A stretch of DNA of 64,000 nucleotides from Hyphochytrium catenoides (taxonomy: Eukaryota > Protista > Hyphochytriomycota). The DNA is taken from the NCBI GenBank assembly GCA_900088475.1, contig FLMG01000335.1:124001-188000 (forward strand). The letters are read 5' to 3'. The notes under the pieces are model-generated. The model worked only from the letters and a program-made list of their open reading frames with translations. It was not told the origin of the DNA and ran no database searches. Below are positions 24,573 through 60,980 of the stretch, piece after piece (within the stretch, counting starts at the first letter, position 1; each line of letters starts with the position of its first letter). A program made the position numbers and the translations under genes.

Positions 24573-24999
24573 GAAGGGGGTTCGACGGTTAAAGCCTAGC
24601 TTTATATTGGTCTAACCCATATCGANNNNNNNNNNNNNNNNNNNNNNNNNNNNNNNNNNNNNNNNNNNNNNNNNNNNNNNNNNNNNNNNNNNNNNNNNNN
24701 NNNNNNNNNNNNNNNNNNNNNNNNNNNNNNNNNNNNNNNNNNNNNNNNNNNNNNNNNNNNNNNNNNNNNNNNNNNNNNNNNNNNNNNNNNNNNNNNNNNN
24801 NNNNNNNNNNNNNNNNNNNNNNNNNNNNNNNNNNNNNNNNNNNNNNNNNNNNNNNNNNNNNNNNNNNNNNNNNNNNNNNNNNNNNNNNNNNNNNNNNNNN
24901 NNNNNNNNNNNNNNNNNNNNNNNNNNNNNNNNNNNNNNNNNNNNNNNNAGGGGGTTCGACGGTTAAAACCTAGCTTTATATTGGTCTAACCCATATTGA
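24573..24999. repeat. 53-bp minisatellite spanning an assembly gap
   Basis: gaagggggttcgacggttaaa(g/a)cctagctttatattggtctaacccatat(c/t)ga lies on both sides of the N run; the start-to-start distance of ~374 bp is about 7 units. Confidence 0.8.
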
Positions 25000-25811: not shown

Positions 25812-27476
25812 ATGGCATCTGTAACAAAGTCAGTGGCAGGGAAGACCAAGAACCTGGTCACCCGCTGTCCTTTCTTCAATGTGATTTCCAAGGAGAAGCA
25901 AGCGCTCCTCCCCAACCTGCCAGCTTTGGCGCAGCTCTGCCCGCACCTTCGCAGTCAGGGTTATGGTGGCTCTATGGTTCACATGTCTCATGGCTCTGCT
26001 GCGAGCCAGCAAGCGTCACCTTCTCTCTCGTCGATCCATGTCTCAATGGAAGAGGTAGCTGCACCTCAAGACTTGCACTTTCAGAGCGTCCGGTCTGCTC
26101 CCAACAGAGTGGAAGCTACCGTTTCTCCCCTAAAAAAGGCCAAAAAGGAACCAACCTCTTATGAGAAGGCTTTTAGAAAGACGATTGAGAATATTAAGAA
26201 CGAGGGCCGCTATCGTGTCTTTGCTGACCTGGAGCGTCAGCAGGGAAACTATCCCAACACTCTTTACCACCTTCCTGATGGCACTCAGGTAGAGGTGACT
26301 GGGTGGTGCAGCAATGACTACCTCTGCATGGGGCAGAACCCCAAGGTGCTGAAGGCGATGGAGAATGCGATCTACAAATATGGTGCAGGTGCAGGGGGCA
26401 CGAGGAACATCAGCGGCACTAACCATATGCACGTGATGCTGGAAAAGGAGTTGGCAGACCTACACGGCGCGGAGGGCGCCCTTCTTTTCACCTCGTGCTA
26501 TGTGGCCAATGAGACTACTCTGAGCACTCTGAGTAAGATCTTTCCAGGGATTATCATGTTCTCAGATGAGATGAATCACGCATCAATGATTCACGGTGTG
26601 CTAAACGCAAGAACCGCGAAGAAGATTTACAAGCACAATGACTTGGAGCATTTGGAGAAGCTTCTAAAAGAGGCAGACCCAGATGCTCCCAAGCTGATTC
26701 TTTTTGAGAGTGTGAACTCCATGGAGGGGACCATTGCGCCAATCGAAGAGATCTGCGACTTGGCTGACAAGTACAACGCAATGACCTTCTGCGATGAAGT
26801 GCACGCTGTTGGGCTCTATGGCTCCAGAGGAGGAGGAGTGGCCGAGAGAGATGGTGTCATGGATAGATTGACGATGATAACCGGCACTTTGGGCAAGGGC
26901 TTTGGCGTCATGGGAGGTTACATTGCAGGCTCTGCAGCCCTTGTTGATGCTTTCCGTTCTACTTGCCCTGGCTTTATTTTCACCACTTCGCTTCCTCCTA
27001 CCCTTGCGGCGGGAGCGGTTGCATCTATCCAACACCTGAAGGAAAGCTGTGCTGAGAGAGAGATTATGCATCTCAACTCGATGGAGGTGAAGAGAAGATT
27101 GGTTGAGGAAGGGTTCCCTCTTCTTCCTTCTGTGAGCCATATTGTTCCTCTGATGGTGAATGACCCTGTGAAAGTGAAGCTAGCCGCGCAGATGCTTCTG
27201 GAGAAGCACAGAATCTACGTTCAACCGATCAACTTCCCAACCGTCCCCCGTGGAGAGGAAAGGCTTCGTCTCACTCCTTCTCCTGCTCACACCAAGGAGC
27301 ACATTGACCAACTGGTCGAGGCGCTCAAGGACGTGTGGGCACAGTTGGGATTGAAGAGGGAGAGAGCTTGCCCTCTGAGCATCAAGGACTACGCGCCCAC
27401 TAGTCCTGAGAAGTACCTCCCAGAAGTTACCTTCCACAACGTGGTAACTGACCTCCCTATGGTGGAGTGTGCATAA
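25812..27476 (+). CDS. ALAS: 5-aminolevulinate synthase, mitochondrial (intronless CDS, 554 aa)
   Basis: [56 protein letters not shown]-lysine motif [24 protein letters not shown]. The N-terminal extension carries two CP motifs. Confidence 0.97.
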
Positions 27477-30800: not shown

Positions 30801-33800
30801 GCGCTTCAGACCCACTGTACTGCAAAGAGACAGCATCTCCAGCCTGGTACGTAGTAGGGTGTAAGCAAGTCTCTTATACTGGAGTGCAAATTGTAAGAGA
30901 TCAAGAAGAGAGGCCCTAGCAAAGTCTGCTGGGCACTTTCATGAACACAGGCTAAGAGCTGGTAGGAGACCTCGAAATACAGCCAAAGGACCATGACTGG
31001 AAGAGGTTAGAACTGTCACGGAAGCTGCGGTGACCTAAAGGGACAGAGCACGCTTACCTCTTGGTATAAATTCATTAGGATACGAAGCGGTTGGCAACCA
31101 GGTTCAAGCTCGACCGTGTTGGAGAAGCCCATTTCCAGCAACTGCTCACCAAGGGCGCGGGCGCCAGTGGCGTACTGAGCTACATTCTGGATGAATGAAG
31201 AGTAGCAAAGAGTCAGAGTACAAAAGGTTACAAGCCTCGAGCATCTGCCATCCTTGCTTATCGAGCTCGAGGTAATGATGTATCGAAGCGTAGAGACTTG
31301 AAGTTACTGCTGAAACATATCAAAGGAGCAGATAGCCAAAGCGCTGACGCTCGAGCCTATATACTAACACTACAGGGACGAGCAGCTCAAGAAAGCTTTT
31401 GGTCTGAGACATAGAAGCTGGAAGTACAAAGAGTTTAAGAGAGCTAAAAAAAGCCCTACCGTCCTGTCTAGGCAATCAATGCAGTTCGTCCGCAGGATGC
31501 CCCTTTGAAACTTCCAGCCATACAATGAGTCATCGGCGTCATTCTTAATGACTGCGCCGTCTCCTAAGCCTTCTAGTCCTCCGTCCTCGTCTCCTTCTTC
31601 AGTTGGCACTTCTTTTCGAGGTTCTTTGCTTCTCTCCCGCTTGATTGGTTGGCAACAGAAGAAGCCGATATGCTTAAGAGAGTAAACTGCCACTGCATTG
31701 AGCGCATGAAGAACAGGGAAACGTTTCTTCAACTTTGAGTGGTCGAGGGCGATATAAGGCATGCGGTGATGTGGTGGTAGCAGGCTAGGAGGAGGATGTA
31801 GTTAGCTCAAGTTTAAGGCTGCATAAAGCATCATTCCCGGCCTATAAACAGATCCCCTTACTCAAACTTGAATAAGAACAAAAGTCCAGTGCACTCTTGT
31901 TTCAAGCTCTGCATCCAGGGTGTGCATACCGTTCTAGCGTGCTGTCCCTAATTTTGTCCTGCAATATCCCCAACTGTATCCCTTTGCAACTTTCTGCTCT
32001 TTGACGTTCGGCCTCTTTCCGTCTTGTCTCTAACCATAATTCTTGGTCTCACCTCTACTCACCTATTTAGGTACTGCACTGCACCTGCGAACTCCTCGCC
32101 AACAATGACTTCTCTCTGCCTCTTTTCTGTCAGTTTGACCAGATTGAGGACGATGATGCGGGAACCATAGCGCTCTATGAGGTCCATGAAGTGCTTCTTG
32201 GTCGAGGTGTAGGTTGGGTCCTTGCGGTTGACTGCACCAATAGAGTTTGGCCTTATGAAGATGAGAGAATATTCCAAGCAAGCAGAGTAGGGAGCATATC
32301 ACTGAACAGTGTGGGGAGAGATAGAGCGTATAAAGACTTGAGCAAAAAGTAAGCACCAGAAGACTACATCGTAACCCTGTAGTGGAACCTCCAGTCTGTT
32401 GGTGACACGCCTCCATGGCAGACAACTCACTCTTAATCTCTGGCTTAGGAACGGTCACGCTTGTCTCTTGACTCCAGTGTACGGGCAGTGATCCTCTGTA
32501 CTGTACGAAGGAGGAGAAGCGTCCGNNTCCCACCTCTCTTCAGATACCGTGTCCCAGCAAAGAATCGGGATCTCCTGGCAATGAGACAAAGGGAAACTGC
32601 TCGGCCAAACATTGAGCACTTCCGCTGGCCATAAAACCCATAGGCTAGGTGCACCAGCCATCGTTTTCGACTTTCGGAAGAAAGGCAGGCAGAGAACTCA
32701 CGGTTCAAATGCGCAGACCAGAGAAACCTGATGCGCAGAAGATCGTAAAGGCAATTGAATGGAAGATGAGCGTCTTTCGCTAGTTCCCTTATCAACCAAT
32801 GTCATAACATTCATTGTTCCCCCTATAATCCGATAGAACTCTTATCGTTGGCCTCATGATATAGTCCAGCTACATCAGTCTGGCTCAAATCTGTCTCTTT
32901 GATGGGATGCTCTCTCGTGTGAATCTTCGTGACGATTCCGTACCTGTCTTGAGGTTCGTGCAGCGGTGGATCATTCTTGGCAGCAGCCACCATATTCCTC
33001 TGGAGGCTCTTCGTAACGTCATAGGTATAAGAGAAGTAGAAGTCCTTGGTCAGGTCCATAAAGTGGAAAAGGCCGAGATACCTGATACCACATATAGTAA
33101 GCAAGATGACATATAAGCTAAAGCCGGGCGTGAAGCTAGATGCGCTAACAGAAATGAAGGGTTTCCAGCCCGTATAGCCAATCCGATTGGCGAGTGGCTA
33201 ACAACGTCAACGCCTGCCCGGCAAGGGAAACGTGGAAGTAGAGAAGTTCTCCTAGTATCTTTTTGTCTTACCTGGCCTCGACCTCCTCTTCTAGACTGGC
33301 ATAGAACAGACTGTTGACCCTAGACCAGATCGAGCTCACCGAGTGATTGCTTGAGACAGGAAGGATTTGCGTTGAGCTGATGCCGTAGATTGGGTTTCCA
33401 CCTAAAAGCATTCAGGAGCCGAGGAAGTAAGGGCACATGCGGAACTGAGAACACTTTCGTCTCATTTCCCCTAGCCAGTGACGTATGAAAGTATCACTCC
33501 GATTCTTTCTATGAACGCTCTAGCCAGCAACATCTTGCCTAGTGTTTGCCCAGCTGCTTTCAATTTCGTTCCAGGCGTTGAGGGGTTTTGTCCGCGATGT
33601 CTTACCGATGCTTCCAATTTGTCTGTTCTGCACCATAAGAACAAGGTAATAACCTAGCTTGAAGCGAACAAAGCCCAGCAGGCCGCAGGCAGAAATGCTA
33701 TGCGATAGACCTCCATACTTCTTCTCCTGGAAATTTAGCTCCTAAACAAGAGTAAGGTGAGTCCAGACTGATTGCAGGGACAGAGCTATTGCCGGTAAGC

Positions 33801-34658: not shown

Positions 34659-35614
34659 GATGAACCTCTGTCCCTTCAACTTCCGCCACTTAGGCCCCTT
34701 GGCGTTGCGTCTGCACAGCTTCTACGGTAGGCAAGCTCACAGGGAGACCAATACGATCCCTCCGAGATGACCATTCCTCCTTCTAGGTCGTCTTGTCTCT
34801 TGAGAGCAGCAAATGACGGACTACGCACGCGCTTCGTTTCAGGCGGTCCGTAAGCTTGGTCTTAAGCCCCTTTCTCTCGCATGAACAGCTGGTCCAAGCC
34901 CTCTTTGTTGCCGCTTCTACTGACGCGCCATCGCCCCGCGCTGTTCCTGACCTCCGCGCTGCATTCTCCATAAGGCAAAATCTTCATCTTGACCTCAACC
35001 TTTGACTCCTTCATCAACGAGAGTGCTGTATGGGAGAGGCCCGAGTAATGTACTCGTCAATATGACTCGAGCGAGTATAGTAATTATAGACCTATAGCAC
35101 GCTTCTGTACCCGGGTTAAAGTAAACCCGAGACGTGATGGAAATGAGGTGATGCAACATTCTGATCTTCATTCTCTGCATCATTTGATTTGCCCTTGATC
35201 CAGCTCTTAGGTGCTTCCTGCTTCCCTTCACTGGAGAGGTACGAAGTCTGGTGAGAGCACTGGTACCGCCAGGTTGAAGTCTCCTTCCGTCCCCAGCGTC
35301 CATCCTCTCCTTTCTTCAAGAGACATTCTCAGCTTCTCATCCTCTGCTTTCCCGTCATAGAGAAACCAAGACCAAAAGCCAATCAATAGATAAGGCTCAA
35401 GCGTTCTCCTTCATTGAGGCAAGCCACTTCTCCTTCATGCTGGCATAAGAAGTTAGTAAAGGCTATTCCTGCTAGGATTCATGGACGCATAAGCAGAAGG
35501 AACTCACTGAAGAGCTTGCAGCACTAGATGCCTGTGAAAGCAGCAGACCCAAAGTCAGTAGAGCATGAGGCAAAAAAGAAGTCCTTCCCTTTCTCATAGC
35601 ACTAATCAATGACA

Positions 35615-38600
35615 ATGGAGAGAGACACGGTACAGGGCCTCCGAAGCCATATTATTAAGAGACTTCGCCTGGAGCGTGCCAGTGGCCCGTCGTCCTCCTA
35701 CAGTCATGCTAATCTTGGCCCAGAAGAACAGCGTCAGCTGCTGTTGCGGGCCTACGAGCTCGCGAAAAGCACAAAAGCAGATGACTCTTCGATAGAGAGT
35801 GCTTCCCGCAAAAAGGCGGACGACATAAGCCAACACCACAAAGATAAAGCTAATCAATTGTTTGCTGCTGGACGACATGCTGAGGCTCTAAGGCATTATA
35901 CCCTTGGCCTAGCCTACGCAGGCGATTGCCATCTCTTGGCTGTTCTCTTCTCCAACAGGTGGTAAATCCTCCTCGCCCTTGATAGTCTGATGCGCCCATT
36001 AGATGATATATGCTTCGTCTGCCTTCCTCTCCCACCTTGCGCTCTTCTCACACTACTTCCGCCTCCACCCATGGTCCCTCTCTCTTTGCCTAGATCGCTT
36101 GTCTTGGTGAAGTTGGGCCAGCTTTCCCTGGCCCTAAAGGACGGCGTATCTGCCCTTCAATATGATCCATACTACGCTAAGGCTTGGAGTAGACAAGCGT
36201 TCATCGCATCCACGATGCTTACTCTTGAGGTTGAGAAGGGAAGGGCTGCTGACACACAAAAAGAGATTGAGCTTCGCCGCTGGGCAAAGGTTGGAAAGGA
36301 ACTGGGAGAGAACCTACTGGCTCATTCAGACAAGATAGACAGGCGACTTACAGAGTGTGTTGCATCAACGGCATCGTATAACCTCTCAATTAAGGATTTC
36401 TGGGAAAAGCCGGCTTCTTTGGAAGAACAGCTGCAAGGGGAAGACACCAAGCCCATTTTGGCAGTAAGTCATGGTGATGAGTCAGGGAGGGGCTTGATGT
36501 CGCTCGAGGTGATAGAACCCGGTCAGGTGTTACTTCGGGAGAAGCCCATTGCATGGGTCCCTCTCATCTCTTCTCTCTCCACCTCTGGGGACTGGTGTTT
36601 TTGCTGCTTTGAGCCCTGTCTCGCCCCGGTTTGGTGCGAGTACTGTCCACAATTCTCCTACTGCTCAACTGTTTGCCGAGAAAGAGACTGGGATACTTTC
36701 CACAGCTTTGAATGCCAACAGAAGCTCTTCCAGGGTACGTATTTTCACCACAGCCTCGCCCGTATATCGTCCGATTGTCCCAAGTCTCGGTCTCTATTTT
36801 CTGCACGCGTACCTCACTCTCGCCACTTGTTGATCCTGTGATTCACCTTCTTCCCTCTAGACAATGGACTAGACCCGACAGTCCGCCTAGCTTATAGGTG
36901 AGTCTGTGTATCTGATTATGATTCTTCTTGTTTCCTTATAAATTAAGGCTAGTGCCCTTCTCTTTATGGTGGTCTCTTCACTCTTAGCACGCTTCTCTCT
37001 CCGGCGTCGGTGTGTTGCTGTTACTCGTTTTCAAACTTTTGGTCCGGTCGACCTACCTAAAGAAGGGTCGCTTCTGGGCGTTCGCTTACCTAGTTTCCAT
37101 CGAAATAGACTTAGAGCACTTGAGCGACTGCAACGACAGAGTGAATTGACACATTTCGTTGACCCTCATGAGCTGACCTCTAAATGGGGCTATGGCACTG
37201 TTAAACTGAGAGAATGGGAAGCCCAAGACGCCGAAGACCTTGCACGAATTGCCAACGATCTCGCAGTACGTTCATATGTTGGCCGTCGTAATATAAATGG
37301 AAGTAAGTCACAGGTTGCCGGCAGGTGTGGTGGTACCGCGGACAGAGTTTTCCCCATCCTTACGCAAAGAAAGATGCCCAGTCATGGATCCGGTCAGCTC
37401 AGGTTAGTGCGCCCTTCTGCCTCTCCGGTTCAAAGCTTGCCTTAGAACTTAATCCCCGACCGCTTAGCTCCTGTTCCCTACGTCTGGGCAGTTAGGTGTA
37501 ACAAGAATAATCACACTTTCGCCTTTGAATTGCTACTTTACCTTCCCAGCTCTTGCTCATATGCCACCTCATTTTGTTTCTACTCTCTGCCTGCGGTCCT
37601 CCCATAACTAGTCCGCATCAATTAATGCGTCCCAACAAATCTCTGGAGAAGGGTGTCATCTGGCTTTGGAAATGTTGGACAAGGCAGGCCAAGCGGCTTC
37701 CCTCGCCGGAGCCGTGTCTCTCACTTTACCGCAATCCAAGTCTTCCTTCGCTCTTCTTGGCTTTTGGTTTAAATCATCACTAGATAGGGTGCAGCGGATT
37801 CACTGCCTCACGGCCGCATTGGAAAAAGTGAAGGAGCTGCTTGCCTGCCGCGGCAAGTGGAGGTAAGGGCCCCGTTGCCTGCTTTCGATGTCTTACGGTC
37901 CCATCTAAGTTCTAGGGTTTTTTTAATACACAGGAATATAGACATATATACTTGTGTTTCATCCTTCCCTCCCATACCAATAGGAATCTCGGATCAGCAG
38001 ACTCTTGAAGATTGTGGATTCGTTCTAGTCGGTAGTGATAGAACTACCTTACCACTTCCTTGCTCTTCTTCTCTGGATGTTAACGTTCCGTCAGCGTCGC
38101 CTCCCTGTCTCGTTTTCTCAGATCTGTCAAACTCACCTCACCTTTATATTTCAAGGCCGGGTCGCTGGTAAACGGTTGAAGCGTGGGCTTGCCTTGGACG
38201 AAGAGTGGTATCGATGCGCTCTAACGTTTACAAAGAATGCAAAAATGGGCCCATCCTTTGCCTCCCCATCTCCAAATCGACAGCTGGCTGATTTGGAGAC
38301 CCATTCCAGTGACCTGTCTAGAGAAATANNNNNNNNTTTCTGTCTCGGTCCCTTCATGTCTACCCACATCTATCACATTTTTGTGCCAAGGGATGCGCAT
38401 CCACCTTCTGCTGACGTTGTCATTTTGCCCAACCCGCATTGTATGTACGACTTCTAGGTCAAATGGGTCTCGCGGCCGACGGTACTAACGTTGAATCAAA
38501 TCGAATACGTGTGACAGGCTGGTCTTCTTACTGCTACAGACAAGTGGAGGCAAACCTTAGGAGGGTTTAGTGAGCAATCTTCCCTTGCAAAGGTACCAGA

Positions 38601-40864
38601 AAGGTTACATTTGGCTGACAGCAAGGAAGAAGCGATTGTAGGATCCAAGTCGATACATGGAGGAGATGGCACTGTTTGTGAGCAGAATGAAAGCCACAAT
38701 GAGCTTGGCTCCTTCTACAAAAACCTACTAAGAGTCCGATTTAACGCATTGGCAATCACCCAAACCATTGAAGACACCGAGAAGGTAAGACTGGGGCACT
38801 GGTAGCCAAGTCTTTTCTTTCTCAATTGCCGTCAGAACGCTCTCCTAGTCACCAAGTTCTGTTGCTGGGCAGCAGCACTCGTCGTCCCATCCGTACCTAG
38901 TCGCACACACGAACATAAATATCTTGAAAATCTTTGCTGGTTTTCCTCCTCATGGCTGTTGCTAAGCCGCTTCTCCCATTGACTGTGTTCCCTCAGCCCT
39001 CAAGTGGTATCGTGAATATGCGTCACAGGCGGTTAGGCCTGGGTGTATACCTCCAAGCTTCGTTGGTAAACCACTCCTGCGAGCCAAACACGTTGGTCCG
39101 TTTTGCCGGGAGCACAATTGAGCTAGTAGCGACCGCACCCATAGCTAAAGGTTGACCCTTGCGCAACACGCCGCACCTATTCTCTCCTTCTTACTCCAAG
39201 GACCCGAGGTCCTGGCTCTGCGTCTGACAGTGTCGTGTTTCATAAAATGTTGAGACCTACATCAACCTGCCCAGATAGCAAATGTCATGTTGCCTGTATT
39301 GCGGCTAGGGAGCTCGTTCTCCACGTATTCTCTGTTTTCATGTACATTCCCCAAAAAATTAAGGGGATTCTGTCTGACTTCAGCATGCAGGTACTGAGAT
39401 CTCGATATCCTATGGCCCCACCAGTCGAACCTACAGCTATGAGGCCCGGCAAGCCGCATTATTTGCAGAGTACAACTTCCACTGCAAGTGTAAAACTTGT
39501 GAGGGAGACAAGGGCAAACAGACAGAAAAAGTAAGTCATGCCCTTCCCTTCTTGAAAATTGCCCTCACATGCACCTCCCTCTCTTTCTCTCTTTGGGGTG
39601 TCACTTCAACTCATCTCTCCTCTGGTTCCTGCGTTGTCGATAACGCAGCTATTGCAGCTTTACTGTCCGAGCGGCAGCTGCAACGGATCCATTGAGGCGG
39701 CTGTTACCGGAAGACTAGGAGGTGTGATCATAGGCGCCAATAATGACCGTTGTACATCTTTGACACCAGCTCCGGCGAGGTTCTTCGCCTTTCTCTACAC
39801 ACTACCATTCTCATTCGCCTCTTGCCTATCCGATGTCTTCCTAGGCTGGGGCTCAGCCTCGCCAAGCGGCGCGCTTCCACGATGCCGGTCGTGCCAACAG
39901 GAAATTTCATTCTCTCTTGTGAATCGGCGCGTAGCTGAGTCGCTCAGACTCAAGGAGAGAGGTGACCTTGCTATGGAGAAGGGTAGCATGCGAGAGGTAA
40001 GACTCCTACCACACCAGGAGGAAGGTAGAAGATGATGGCATGGGGAAGCCCGCCGCTGCCGTCTTCAGGTTGTCCACCGATGATCTATTCCTTTGGTGCT
40101 TTTCCTAGAGTTGCCCTATTCTCAACCCACAGGTGTCCTTGCTGCTTACTCGTCGTGGTGTGTAGGCCCTGACAGCTTACAAGGCTTGTATCCAGCTCTT
40201 TATGTCTACCATCAAGCTGGAGACAATTGCTACGGGTTGGGAGGAGCTTCTGAGGCCGCTGGCGGAGTGCTTTGACAGACTCGCAAAAGTACTGGCTGAG
40301 GCTGAGCACTACGGTGACAGCGCGGAGGCCTGTGCAAAGGCTGTCATGCTGTTGGAGAAGCTCTATCAAAGCTCAGACGTCGAACTTGGGCACGAGTACT
40401 TCAAGCTTGCTCAGGTAATGTATGGAGAAGTCATGTACTATAACCCAAGCAGATTTAGCTCTTTGGGAAGGTTAGAGCCCTTCCCCGTATAGGACAAGGA
40501 GCAGGAGGGGCTAGTGGAGGTGGGCTTGCATTGAAGGCTTTATAGCTAACGTGACCTTAGCCATCCCAAGGCTTGGAAGGATAGGGAGTGCTTAAGGACG
40601 ATGGACACATAAGGGAGTGGTCAACTAAATAGGTGGTACTAGAGAGAAGGGAGACTAGTCCACTGCCTCGGAGAGGGCAAAGGATTGCCATAGCGTGATC
40701 ATTGGTCTAAGAGGATGGTTGTTCTGCAGCTGTACTTCAACGGTGGACAGTTAGGGCAAGCACGCAAGTGGGCTGCGAAATGCCGGAGTACCCTCGGTCC
40801 AGTCCTTCCAGAGCCCGACGACAGGATGAAGGAGCTTCAGCAGATGGAAGAGTTTTTCCGCTGA
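35615..40864 (+). CDS. SMYD4-like TPR-SET-MYND lysine methyltransferase with an inserted GNAT-like domain
   Basis: N-terminal TPRs; GRGLMSLEVIEPGQVLLREKP (SET-N); MYND CFCC..CEYC..YCSTVC..HSFEC; ASLVNHSCEPN; EISISYG; post-SET YNFHCKCKTC; C-terminal TPR ELGHEYFKLAQ|LYFNG. Confidence 0.85.
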
Positions 40865-52947: not shown

Positions 52948-55900
52948 CTAACGCCTCCTAGTCCTTTGAGCTCGATGGTAGACCTTCTGCCTAGGATTCA
53001 ATGTAATATATGCCGCTCTTTCGATCCTCAAACAGTCATGAAACTGCTCATGCTCGGTGAGGCGGCTCTGTTGCTTGTATGGTGAATAGGTGCAACTGCC
53101 TATTACCGATGCCTGGTAGAGAGTTAATCCACCATAGCAAGTGTCCACCTCCAACACAGGCCTCAGCTGGTCTATGACGGCATAGTTTAGGCTCTGGAAG
53201 TTTCTATGATCAACACCCTGGCCCTTGAAGGACTTGGCGTCATAATACCGGGAGAACTCACTCTTCACTTGTCCGTTGGAGCACATCACATCCCAGGGTA
53301 CGTACACTCTTGTTTTATCATGCAAGGCATACGGCCGGTTTGCCATCTCGCTAGCCCTATAGCCAAAGGACGACGCAATGCCGTCGATTTCCCAGCCTCC
53401 GGACATGTCACTGTCAAAAACGGCAAGTATGTCGTGCGAGAAAGTCCTGGCGTGAGAGAGGAGAACATTCCGAAGCGCTGCCATCCTCTGCACTCTATCC
53501 TCTTGGCTCTTGAATTGCTGTGGTTCCGATGCAAGGTTATGCTTCTGAAGCTCTTCATCAGGAACTAAATGGACTCTTCCGTTCCTTTTGCTCCACTCCT
53601 GAATAACGTCCCTTGTCCGGTCAGAAGAGCCTCTCTCCAAAAGAACAATAGCATAATCCTTGAACTTGCTGCCTGTGAGCTCCAGGAGAGTGATCATGTT
53701 GAGCAGGGAGAGATCAACGTTCCTTGCGAGGGCGCACAACACGACTCGCAGCTCCTTCATATCCCCATAGCCAGCATTTATATGACGCTCGATTTCGCTT
53801 TTCTCCCACATGCCATCCACCCGGAAGTCCGGTAGCTTTTTGGTCCGCTCCAGCCCAATTGACCTGAACTCTTCTACCTGGTCACCAGTATAGACAGACC
53901 GCTGCAAAGTTGATAAGGCCAGCAGCCCTTCCCGAGTATGTCTTAGAATCTCTGCCTCTATGTCGGAAACAGCAAATCTAAGATTGCTGAAAGGCTCCCA
54001 CTGTCCCTCGGCATAGTATTGATAGCAGGACTCCTGATTGACAACTTGGCCATAGCCGAGACGATCATACCTTTGAATGTATTGCCAGATAAACTTCCTG
54101 CCCTCCGGCTTGCTCAGCTTAGCGCCATTGCGATGTAGGAAGATGATATCTCCTTTCGAGTCGTGCTGGACAATTGTCAACCCACAGAAGCCTTCCCCTT
54201 TCTCTCTGATAAACCCCGCATTCCCTGGGCGACGCTTGATCATATGGAAAGGTTGCCCATATTTCATCCACGAAAGGCGGTACATGTCCTTGTCCCCCCA
54301 AATAAAGCTGTAGAGAAGCTCGTGGTGCGCCATCAGATGCTGGAGAACCCCTAGTGGGCCTTTGGATCTCCTTAAGTCAATCAAAAGCCTGTCCACTCTC
54401 CTGCTCATGCATATCTTGAAAGTCCATGTTGAGCATCTTCCATAGATAATTCGAAGAGCCAAGGTTGACGAAGATAGAATACTGCGGATGCCAGAAGTCT
54501 GGCCAGAAGACTGCTCCTGTCTCTCTGTAAGGCTGGAGATCAAAAAGGTACTCAGGATCCCTCACAGGGTAGTTGTCCGCATCCAGAAGAAGGACTTCCG
54601 AGAACGCGGTGTTCAATAGGGCAAATATTTTGACCAGAAAGCCTCTCGTCATCTTGTCATACTCCGACACTTTCTCGCCATGTTTCACTGGCATAGTGGC
54701 CGTACGCCAGGAAAGTGGGCCTTTGTAAGCAGACTTGAGAAGCTGTTGGATGTGATGCTGACTCTCTCCAAACTCCGTAGCATCAGACCAAACCTCTATT
54801 GGCAGCTGAGTGCCATAAGAGCTAAGAAGCCTAAAGAGGGCATAGGCGTTGATCCAGATGCCGGGATGAATGCAAGTGATGATCCCTTTGTTCCTTTTCT
54901 CCTCTACAGCCTTGAGGCCGCCTGCAGTTCGAGCAAAATAGTCCTGGTCCCAGAGTGGGAGTGGGTAGCCGTGGCTTTTCTTCAACTGTGCTACTTCTTT
55001 GTCTAGTTTGCGACTGAACCGCACCATCGCGGGTAGATTGGCGCACTTAAGACCCAGAAACCAGCCGCATTCATGCGGGGCAAGGCCGTACAGCTTTCCT
55101 GTCTTTGGATCTTCATACTCACAGAATCCGGAGTCAAACTGTCCTACTCGGGCATCACAGCTCCTATTCTCTAGGCGAACATTGCTGTAGGGGCTGCACT
55201 GAGTCGTAGGCCTGTATGTTATACAACGGAGACCTGGATGAGCTTCTAGCGTCTTTGCCATGGCCTTGAAGTCTAGAATAAACGTATGACTTTTACCGAA
55301 CCAATCCTGTGGGCTCTTACAGCTCAATGGGCGGTGATAATGTGTCTCTCGGAGGTCTATTCGATAGCGCTTCTTGCTGACCTTGTGAACATATTCACAC
55401 CAACCCGACAAAGGAGGAAGGAGAGTAGCGTCACAGCTGTGATCTAAGGCTGGTGTCCGTTTCTCTCCTCCTCCAGAGAGGGAGTCTACAGCCATGAACG
55501 ATAGACAATCCAGCTCGTCCCACAGCCGCTTGCCTTCCTTCTCTATCAAGGTGCGGCTGATAACCGTGGCAGGTGGGACAGGCGCTTCTGGGTTGTACAG
55601 TGCGATGCTGTCACAGCGAATAATAAAGCTGGAAGAGTTCTTTGGGACTAGCCGGTACATCTCCCCTGTTGCAGTGTTCCTATAGACGCAAAAGCCAGAG
55701 AGACTTGCATCAACAAGTGTGTCGCATGGCAGGTCTCGCGCAGGATCTCTCGACGAGGAAGGATGAGGCCCTTCCGTGGCATAAAAACGTTGGCACCTCA
55801 TGGCCGGGTTCACAGCCAGTTTATCTGCCTCCACAAAAGACTCCACAGTGAGATAGGAAGATGGGTCCAGAGTGTAAAGCAGAGAATCACACGAGAAGCG

Positions 55901-60317: not shown

Positions 60318-60980
60318 CTTCTCTCTCTCTCTCTCTCTTCTCTTTCTCTCCCTTTCCGCTCCCTCTTCTCTTCTTACCACCCATCCTTGTCTCGTCTCCC
60401 TATTGCTCATCGCTCTCTGTCCTCTCTTTCTCTTTTCCTCTCTCTCTCTCTCTCTCTCTCGTATGCGACCACCACCATCTTCTCCCTCCCCTTGTTACTT
60501 TTTCCTCCCTTCTCTCTCCCTTCCACCTCTCTCTCTTTGTCTCCTCAGGTCAACTTCCTCTTCTTGGTCTGTCTTTCTTCCTCCTCCATTCTTTCCTGCT
60601 ACTGGTTGATGATGATGGCGCCGCTGCCCTTGGGCAAAAAAACAGAACACACTTTCACTTGTGATGGAGTGTACTCCCTATCGAAATTAGATCAAGATAG
60701 TACTAAGTAAATATGTTGAATCTTCATTTAGAGCCGAATCTAATAGCATTCGAACAAACGTGGGTGGGCATGTTGTCAGCTTTCTGGTCAAGTGAGGGGA
60801 GATAGCCTTTCATATAACCTTTCGAGACGGGCGGACAGATGGGTGGGCTGCCGTTCCGTCACGTTGGCATGAGGCGGACGTGAGGGTCAAGGTTGCAGCT
60901 GGATGTAGGGATGAAAAGACAAAGTAGGGGAGAGNNNNNNNGAGAGAGAGAGAGAGAGAGAGAGAAGAGAGAAAAGAGAT
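60318..60980. repeat. CT-rich tract (60318-60600) and GA tract with small gap (60925-60980) upstream of the P450
   Basis: Directly visible. Confidence 0.85.

Follow-up and report, generated by a model that had tools for sequence, protein, structure and literature searches.

The stretch of DNA analysed here, referred to throughout as the window, comprises 64,000 nucleotides of Hyphochytrium catenoides (assembly GCA_900088475.1, contig FLMG01000335.1, positions 124,001-188,000 of the forward strand), and all coordinates given below are window positions. It is intron-rich eukaryotic DNA, in which one multi-exon gene runs along the plus strand from about 35609 to about 40900. Judged by its sequence, this gene is a protein lysine methyltransferase of the SMYD family, and its reading frame carries a block of about 190 residues within the SET-I region, spread over five exons that lie past the MYND finger and ahead of the core SET domain. 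The block bears a statistical resemblance, found at one orphan locus, to Acetyltransf_3 (PF13302) acetyltransferases of the GNAT group. The reading favoured here, to which we assign a probability of roughly 0.6, is that of a GNAT-derived, probably inactive module inserted in the SET-I region of an otherwise intact SMYD enzyme.

The host gene

SMYD enzymes are themselves composed of one domain (MYND) inserted in another (SET), and their choice of substrate is set by SET-I together with the C-terminal lobe. The gene under study conforms to this plan, its SET domain being divided between an S-sequence and a core SET, with the MYND finger lying between the two parts. Exon A matches the whole of the Pfam zf-MYND model (positions 1-39; 22.9 bits, E 8.8e-5, cut-off 22.7), and exon I matches the Pfam SET model (24 bits, E 5.4e-5, cut-off 22.4). 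In phmmer searches against the PDB, residues 129-208 of exon A align with residues 17-92 of SMYD2 and also with SMYD3 (E about 1e-4), and exon I aligns with residues 185-227 of SMYD3 (E 2e-4). These matches to SMYD2 and SMYD3 structures flank the insert on both sides and, with the Pfam matches above their cut-offs, bear out the assignment of the host to the SMYD family that an earlier, preliminary description of the locus had made.

At the motif level the gene retains GRGL, NHSCEPN, the Tyr of TEISISY and the post-SET cysteines (CxCxxC, within FHCKCKTCEG). Because GRGL, NHSC, the Tyr in ISISY and CxCxxC, the SET motifs of cofactor binding and catalysis, are all intact, the methyltransferase is probably active. 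The gene would be read, from end to end, as a TPR-like N-terminal region, the SET S-sequence, MYND, SET-I, core SET, post-SET and, at the C-terminus, a TPR-like domain, in the manner of SMYD4. Enzymes of the SMYD4 type have the same order of parts, with TPR at the N-terminus, a split SET that holds MYND, a post-SET and a C-terminal domain like TPR, whereas the TPR matches obtained here lie below threshold. The weak TPR signals at both ends of the gene would fit a SMYD4-like layout, and the assignment to SMYD4 is a tentative one, made from the architecture typical of that enzyme.

The feature that sets the gene apart is the distance from the MYND finger to NHSC, which amounts to about 380 residues as against about 115 in SMYD2 and SMYD3, as counted from the alignments and the exon model. 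The insert itself extends from 37194 to about 38230, after the first SET-I helix, and is bordered on both sides by linkers of about 18 residues. Its flanks resemble, at the level of pattern, the first SET-I helix of SMYD2 and the ..ESH..L segment of that protein; neither flank was matched in the phmmer search of the PDB. Exon H alone gave no family or PDB match. It also contains (38515-38700) a further polar, acidic SET-I stretch of about 60 residues (..SEQSSLAKVPERLHLADSKEEAIVGSKSIHGGDGTVCEQNESHNE..), which has no match to any family and probably forms a disordered loop.

Gene model and splice junctions

The exon borders were re-derived from the genomic sequence and are collected in Table 1. 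The peptides quoted in the preliminary description are all present in the sequence, in the frames and places given there, and the GT-AG junctions that it followed do keep one frame: a single reading frame runs from the MYND finger to exon G across six introns of 59-211 nt, all six of them canonical GT..AG introns. All along the gene the introns stay short, at 59-240 nt, and their coding strand is rich in pyrimidines. In the case of exon E the sole in-frame acceptor is the AG at 37610-37611, such that the exon begins with SASINASQQ..., 16 residues upstream of LALEMLD.

Exon C carries both RLRALERL..., which belongs to SET-I, and the GNAT-like VKLREWEAQDAEDL, of which GTVKLREW begins at 37194; exon G carries both the GNAT-like ...LALDEEWY, which ends at 38211, and the SET-I motif LADLETH. 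Both transitions between SET and GNAT-like sequence thus fall within single exons and are independent of any splice call. The base composition follows the same division into exons and introns, with a pyrimidine content of 43-55% in the proposed exons (45-55% in exons C-G, like the SMYD exons) and of 58-69% in all introns but one short one. Codon usage favours the proposed frame as the best sense frame for exons C, E, F and G by small margins, and its support is negative for exon D. Joining exon C or exon B directly to exon G leads to a stop within eight codons.

An assembly gap of eight N follows ...LSREI, making the donor site of exon G unreadable, so that the continuity between exons G and H is inferred. 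The sequence 3' of the gap resembles the 3' part of an intron, being pyrimidine-rich, with TACTAAC near 38486 and an acceptor AG at 38513-38514. Within 38480-38514, this intron upstream of exon H thus has a branch-point box that is perfectly of the yeast type, situated some 25 nt ahead of its acceptor. The window holds five N runs, all of them assembly gaps, at 191-229 (39), 24626-24948 (323), 32526-32527 (2), 38329-38336 (8) and 60935-60941 (7), and the one at 38329 is the one inside the gene studied here.

Table 1. Exons, splice junctions and assembly gap of the SMYD gene, in window positions
Feature	Position	Strand	Content
Exon 1	35609..35958	+	Probable start ATG 35609; N-terminal region with TPR-like repeat (sub-threshold Pfam TPR_2, E 0.19); donor AG|GT at 35958/35959
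Exon A	36094..36734	+	End of TPR region, SET S-sequence (GRGL...), MYND zinc finger
Junction	36734|36861	+	GT..AG; split codon G|AC = D
Exon B	36861..36897	+	Start of SET-I (DNGLDPTVRLAY); canonical AG/GT borders; split codons on both sides, frame kept
Junction	36897|37109	+	GT..AG; split codon AG|A = R
Exon C	37109..37265	+	First SET-I helix RLRALERLQRQ, 18-residue linker, GNAT-like beta1-alpha1 (VKLREWEAQDAEDLARIAND) from 37194
Junction	37265|37325	+	GT..AG
Exon D	37325..37402	+	GNAT-like alpha1-alpha2 (FPHPY..KKDAQSWIRSAQ)
Junction	37402|37612	+	GT..AG
Exon E	37612..37862	+	83 residues; putative beta2-beta3-beta4 (LAGAVSLTL...FALLGFWF), degenerate motif A (DRVQRI), putative alpha3
Junction	37862|37934	+	GT..AG; split codon AG|G = R
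Exon F	37934..38031	+	Putative beta5 (NIDIYTCV), alpha4 motif (P..S...L...GF)
Junction	38031|38156	+	GT..AG; split codon G|GC = G
Exon G	38156..38328 or beyond	+	Putative beta6-beta7 (GRVAGKRLKRGLALDEEWYRCALT), Pro/Ser-rich linker, SET-I motif LADLETHSSDL; one uninterrupted frame; GNAT-like span ends at about 38230
Assembly gap, 8 N	38329..38336	.	Hides where exon G ends, donor site included
Exon H	38515..38784	+	Remaining SET-I and start of core SET (..LLRVRFNALAI..); open frame, AG/GT borders
Exon I	38997..39150	+	Core SET with NHSCEPN
Exon J	39391..39530	+	End of SET (TEISISY), post-SET Cys cluster (FHCKCKTCEG); motifs read from sequence
C-terminal exons	39649..40864, borders approximate	+	TPR-like C-terminal domain as in SMYD1-4; sub-threshold SHNi-TPR and TPR_2 at 40202-40489

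Resemblance of the insert to Acetyltransf_3 proteins

Since no curated model matched the insert, as described below, profiles of the Acetyltransf_3 type were built for the comparison. Profile 1 consists of 24 sequences, namely RimL and RimJ from E. coli, together with six proteins related to RimL and 16 diverse plasmid GNATs, the latter chosen by a spread tblastn after a RimL word search and a contig scan had yielded only enterobacterial RimL. Profile 2 consists of 118 other proteins, found by a profile word search and all carrying PF13302 in the database, and profile 3 combines the two.

When the exons were aligned singly to profile 1 with hhalign, the best matches of all five fell in tiling order: exon C at profile positions 12-33 (P 0.0017), exon D at 46-62 (P 0.15), exon E at 81-106 (P 0.053), exon F at 143-155 (P 0.027) and exon G at 159-175 (P 0.43). 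HMMER, with its filters off, gave the same placement for exons C, D and E; its own placement of exons F and G was meaningless and was discarded. The best exon-wise match is that of exon C (hmmsearch, profile 11-31, 5.2 bits, p 7e-4; hhalign P 0.0017-0.005), which reaches an ungapped score of 20.4 bits as against 10.9 for the next diagonal. The language-model features of exon C in the Atlas likewise have PF13302 fragments as their nearest named clusters, with a weak score of 0.79. Exon D is found at the colinear position 45-61 by hmmsearch, by hhalign and by our own dynamic programming, and is weak when taken alone (P 0.04-0.15). Residues 31-56 of exon E align to profile positions 80-105 (liGvis...aeiGYwl) with 15.3 bits; like all the alignments, this one ends just before motif A. 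Residues 15-31 of exon F are placed on the 'p.N..S..vl.r.GF' segment with all three profiles (hhalign P 0.03-0.13).

The order and spacing of these matches were assessed together by a colinear chain score, defined as the sum of the exon-wise local alignments in exon order. On profile 1 the insert scores 64.2 bits. Residue shuffles give 47.4±3.5 and reach this score in 4 of 15,000 and in 0 of 3,000 cases; real windows of non-GNAT proteins give 45.7±4.1 with a maximum of 58.2 (0 of 291), column-permuted profiles have a maximum of 59.8 (0 of 1,500), and the reversed profile gives 42.3. The corresponding values for residue shuffles are 56.8 bits against 44.8±3.2 on profile 2 (reached by 9 of 5,000) and 65.0 bits against 46.1±3.4 on profile 3 (0 of 10,000). 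Exons C-F are thus colinear on three profiles, with shuffle p values between <1e-4 and 2e-3. The true exon order also ranked first among 120 permutations, with a margin below 1 bit, and this ranking is not used as evidence.

The preliminary description had picked the locus for its GNAT-like appearance, and a chained scan blind to frame and to splicing was therefore run over the full 64 kb on both strands, taken as 628 windows of 1.3 kb, to correct for this selection. The locus ranks first of the 628 with profile 2, and also with profile 3 at all three jump penalties (40.9 against 24.3±3.9, the best unrelated window reaching 35.1). Of the end-to-end Acetyltransf_3 pattern claimed in the preliminary description there remains, accordingly, a colinearity of exons C-F above chance at the best PF13302-like locus of the window; the claim does not extend to exon G, which is at noise level. 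The next-best windows of the scan lie at 34701-36200 and 53301-54600 (minus strand), with 54.8-55.6 bits (34701, 34901; J=6) and 35.1 bits (53301; J=8), and are taken as background.

Evidence against a GNAT origin

Several results weigh against descent of the insert from a GNAT. In the comparison with Pfam by HMMER that the preliminary description had suggested, SET and MYND pass, but none of the five insert exons, scanned one by one at E<=10 (a comparison handicapped by exon lengths of 26-83 residues), matched Acetyltransf_3 or any other model of Pfam or NCBIfam. Nor did any of the five, searched singly with phmmer, match a PDB sequence, again up to E 10. An exhaustive phmmer search with exon E against 1.84 billion representative proteins returned only the low-complexity repeat protein P0001, which was rejected as junk. 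AlphaFold2 (AF2) applied to exon E alone gave an all-helical model with a predicted local distance difference test (pLDDT) score of 52, which is of low confidence and uninformative. No orthologue was found in the protein collections searched.

The scores themselves also call for caution. Genuine members that were kept out of the profile, and divided in like proportions, reach 108-193 bits as against 64 here, so that the insert, if a GNAT, would be an extreme outlier. The open reading frame (ORF) of exon C has an E value of 2.7 among 1,708 ORF pieces, and single exon matches are at the noise level of the window. The frame-blind scan places the locus no higher than about 10th among the 628 windows when profile 1 is used by itself. 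The match of exon G to the GNAT C-terminus, at about 8 bits, does not rise above noise, and two of the three profiles misplace the exon; the G-x3-D-x3-Y spacing within it is a resemblance at the level of pattern only. Motif A (Q/R-x-x-G-x-G/A), a hallmark among these acetyltransferases, is absent: as the preliminary description had noticed, it is degenerate, and the position of GKG reads RVQ, with both glycines gone (..LDRVQRIH.., in register with the beta4 strand LLGFWF). To this must be added the unread link from exon G to exon H at the 8-N gap. Because the match to a curated model and motif A both failed, the insert is not filed as a member of PF13302.

Further searches for relatives were equally without result. 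Exon E had no match in the Atlas, a word search with exon A gave no relatives within the length band covered, scans of metagenomes with exons E and A gave none, and tblastn of the exons against the window revealed no paralogue. Chou-Fasman propensities have no discriminating power here.

Alternative explanations

Two other explanations of the locus deserve consideration. The additional residues, about 265 in all, may represent a fast-evolving, lineage-specific expansion of SET-I without any GNAT ancestry, in which case the RimJ/RimL-like motifs would be chance resemblances picked out by a reader. Proteins of the SMYD4 type already have a long interval between MYND and core SET, and much of what was set out above accords with such an expansion, namely the failure of every curated model and solved structure to match, a score far under that of every left-out true member, exon matches that are each at window noise level when taken alone, the place of about tenth of 628 with profile 1 alone, a C-terminal third at noise level with motif A absent, the helical AF2 model of exon E (though with a pLDDT of only 52) and the lack of relatives that might show conservation. 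An expansion of this kind would nevertheless leave to chance the placement of four consecutive exons, colinearly and with the right spacing, on three PF13302 profiles, at scores reached by 0/10,000, 4/15,000 and 9/5,000 shuffles. In addition, the unbiased scan puts the locus at the head of the window when profiles 1 and 2 are combined, PF13302 is the family to which an independent language-model search with exon C points, and the insert has the length of a GNAT domain with linkers on both sides. An expansion without GNAT ancestry seems rather unlikely.

The other explanation concerns the gene model, which may be wrong in that some or all of exons C-G lie outside the mature mRNA, as cassette or decayed exons or as parts of a nested or neighbouring gene, or in that the assembly is faulty near the 8-N gap; no SMYD protein with the insert would then be made. 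The gap does cover one donor site, the support from codon usage is small and for exon D negative, and no annotated protein for the locus or for its neighbour was found in public collections. These points have to be set against six canonical junctions out of six with a frame that holds through five exons, against exon-like and intron-like composition where each is expected, and against the position of both domain transitions inside single open exons. Joins that skip the middle exons run into early stops, and a single intron spanning the insert would measure about 1 kb, several times longer than the other introns of the gene. An error of this kind in the gene model appears improbable.

Comparison with known systems

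The SET-I region is about 85 residues long in SMYD1-3 and reaches about 110 in SMYD5, and the insertions known from SMYD proteins are of 17-39 residues (PMC9221539). Those of SMYD5, known as its M-insertion and S-insertion, have this size and are helical (PMC9221539). Together with its enlarged SET-I they offer a parallel on the side of the methyltransferases, since they too are lineage-specific and are inserted in the split scaffold of SET, MYND and SET-I, where they protrude and reshape the entrance for substrate and cofactor while the SET fold is kept (PMC9221539). The block described here differs from the SMYD5 insertions in that it is as large as an entire foreign domain and bears traces of one in its sequence.

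On the side of the acetyltransferases, RimL, RimJ and other PF13302 GNATs have a similar length of about 185-190 residues and the same order of motifs, with LR..W...DA..L, a polar helix ..DA..WI, l.G.vsl...........lGfW and P..S...L...GF following one another. The elements of their GNAT fold succeed each other as beta1-alpha1-alpha2-beta2-4-alpha3-beta5-alpha4-beta6-7, and GNATs of the RimL type are dimers. In contrast to these proteins, the block has RVQ in place of GKG and C-terminal strands that are not recognisable, and, whereas they stand alone, it is embedded in a domain of another enzyme. The preliminary description knew of no SMYD that contains a GNAT, and a search of the literature likewise found neither a SMYD nor any other SET enzyme of such design.

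Proposed origin and role of the module

If the favoured reading of a GNAT-derived insert is correct, the module would descend from an Acetyltransf_3-type GNAT of the RimJ/RimL kind and would have diverged almost beyond recognition. It would have lost both glycines of the pyrophosphate-binding motif A and, with them, canonical binding of acetyl-CoA, and it is probably not an acetyltransferase. The module would, by its position, project from SET-I beside the entrance for cofactor and substrate, since SET-I helps to form that entrance (PMC9221539). Rather than a second catalytic centre, the most economical function for it would be docking, dimerisation or service as a lid, by which it could select or gate substrates.

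The preliminary description had gone further and proposed an acyl-CoA sensor. No evidence for such a role was obtained, and the missing glycines of motif A argue against it; more likely than an acyl-CoA sensor is a pseudo-acetyltransferase with a part in docking or dimerisation, or one that serves as a lid. In a further reading, the insert would be a folded GNAT whose ligand, bound by some non-canonical means, is still an acyl-CoA, or else a lysine or N-terminal peptide, acetylated or unmodified, and which thereby gates the adjoining SET active site, so that the state of acetylation or the level of acyl-CoA would be coupled to lysine methylation in one polypeptide. There seems little chance that the protein works in this way.

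Should the GNAT ancestry hold, a second whole foreign domain would be nested in SET-I, and the scaffold would tolerate insertions far larger than the 17-39 residues known so far. The gene would also offer a natural case in which a dead acetyltransferase has found new use in a methyltransferase, as a module for specificity or regulation. Were the gating by acyl-CoA or acetylation true as well, the outcome would be a domain-in-domain arrangement that has been described for no SET enzyme. The value of the case is limited for now by its being a single orphan locus.

Neighbouring gene

Upstream of the SMYD gene, the plus strand carries an uninterrupted ORF of 554 residues at 25812-27476, for whose exact product the public gene collection has no entry. 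Its translation belongs to the class I/II aminotransferases (Pfam Aminotran_1_2, 1.8e-72), and the ORF is apparently intronless amid intron-rich surroundings.

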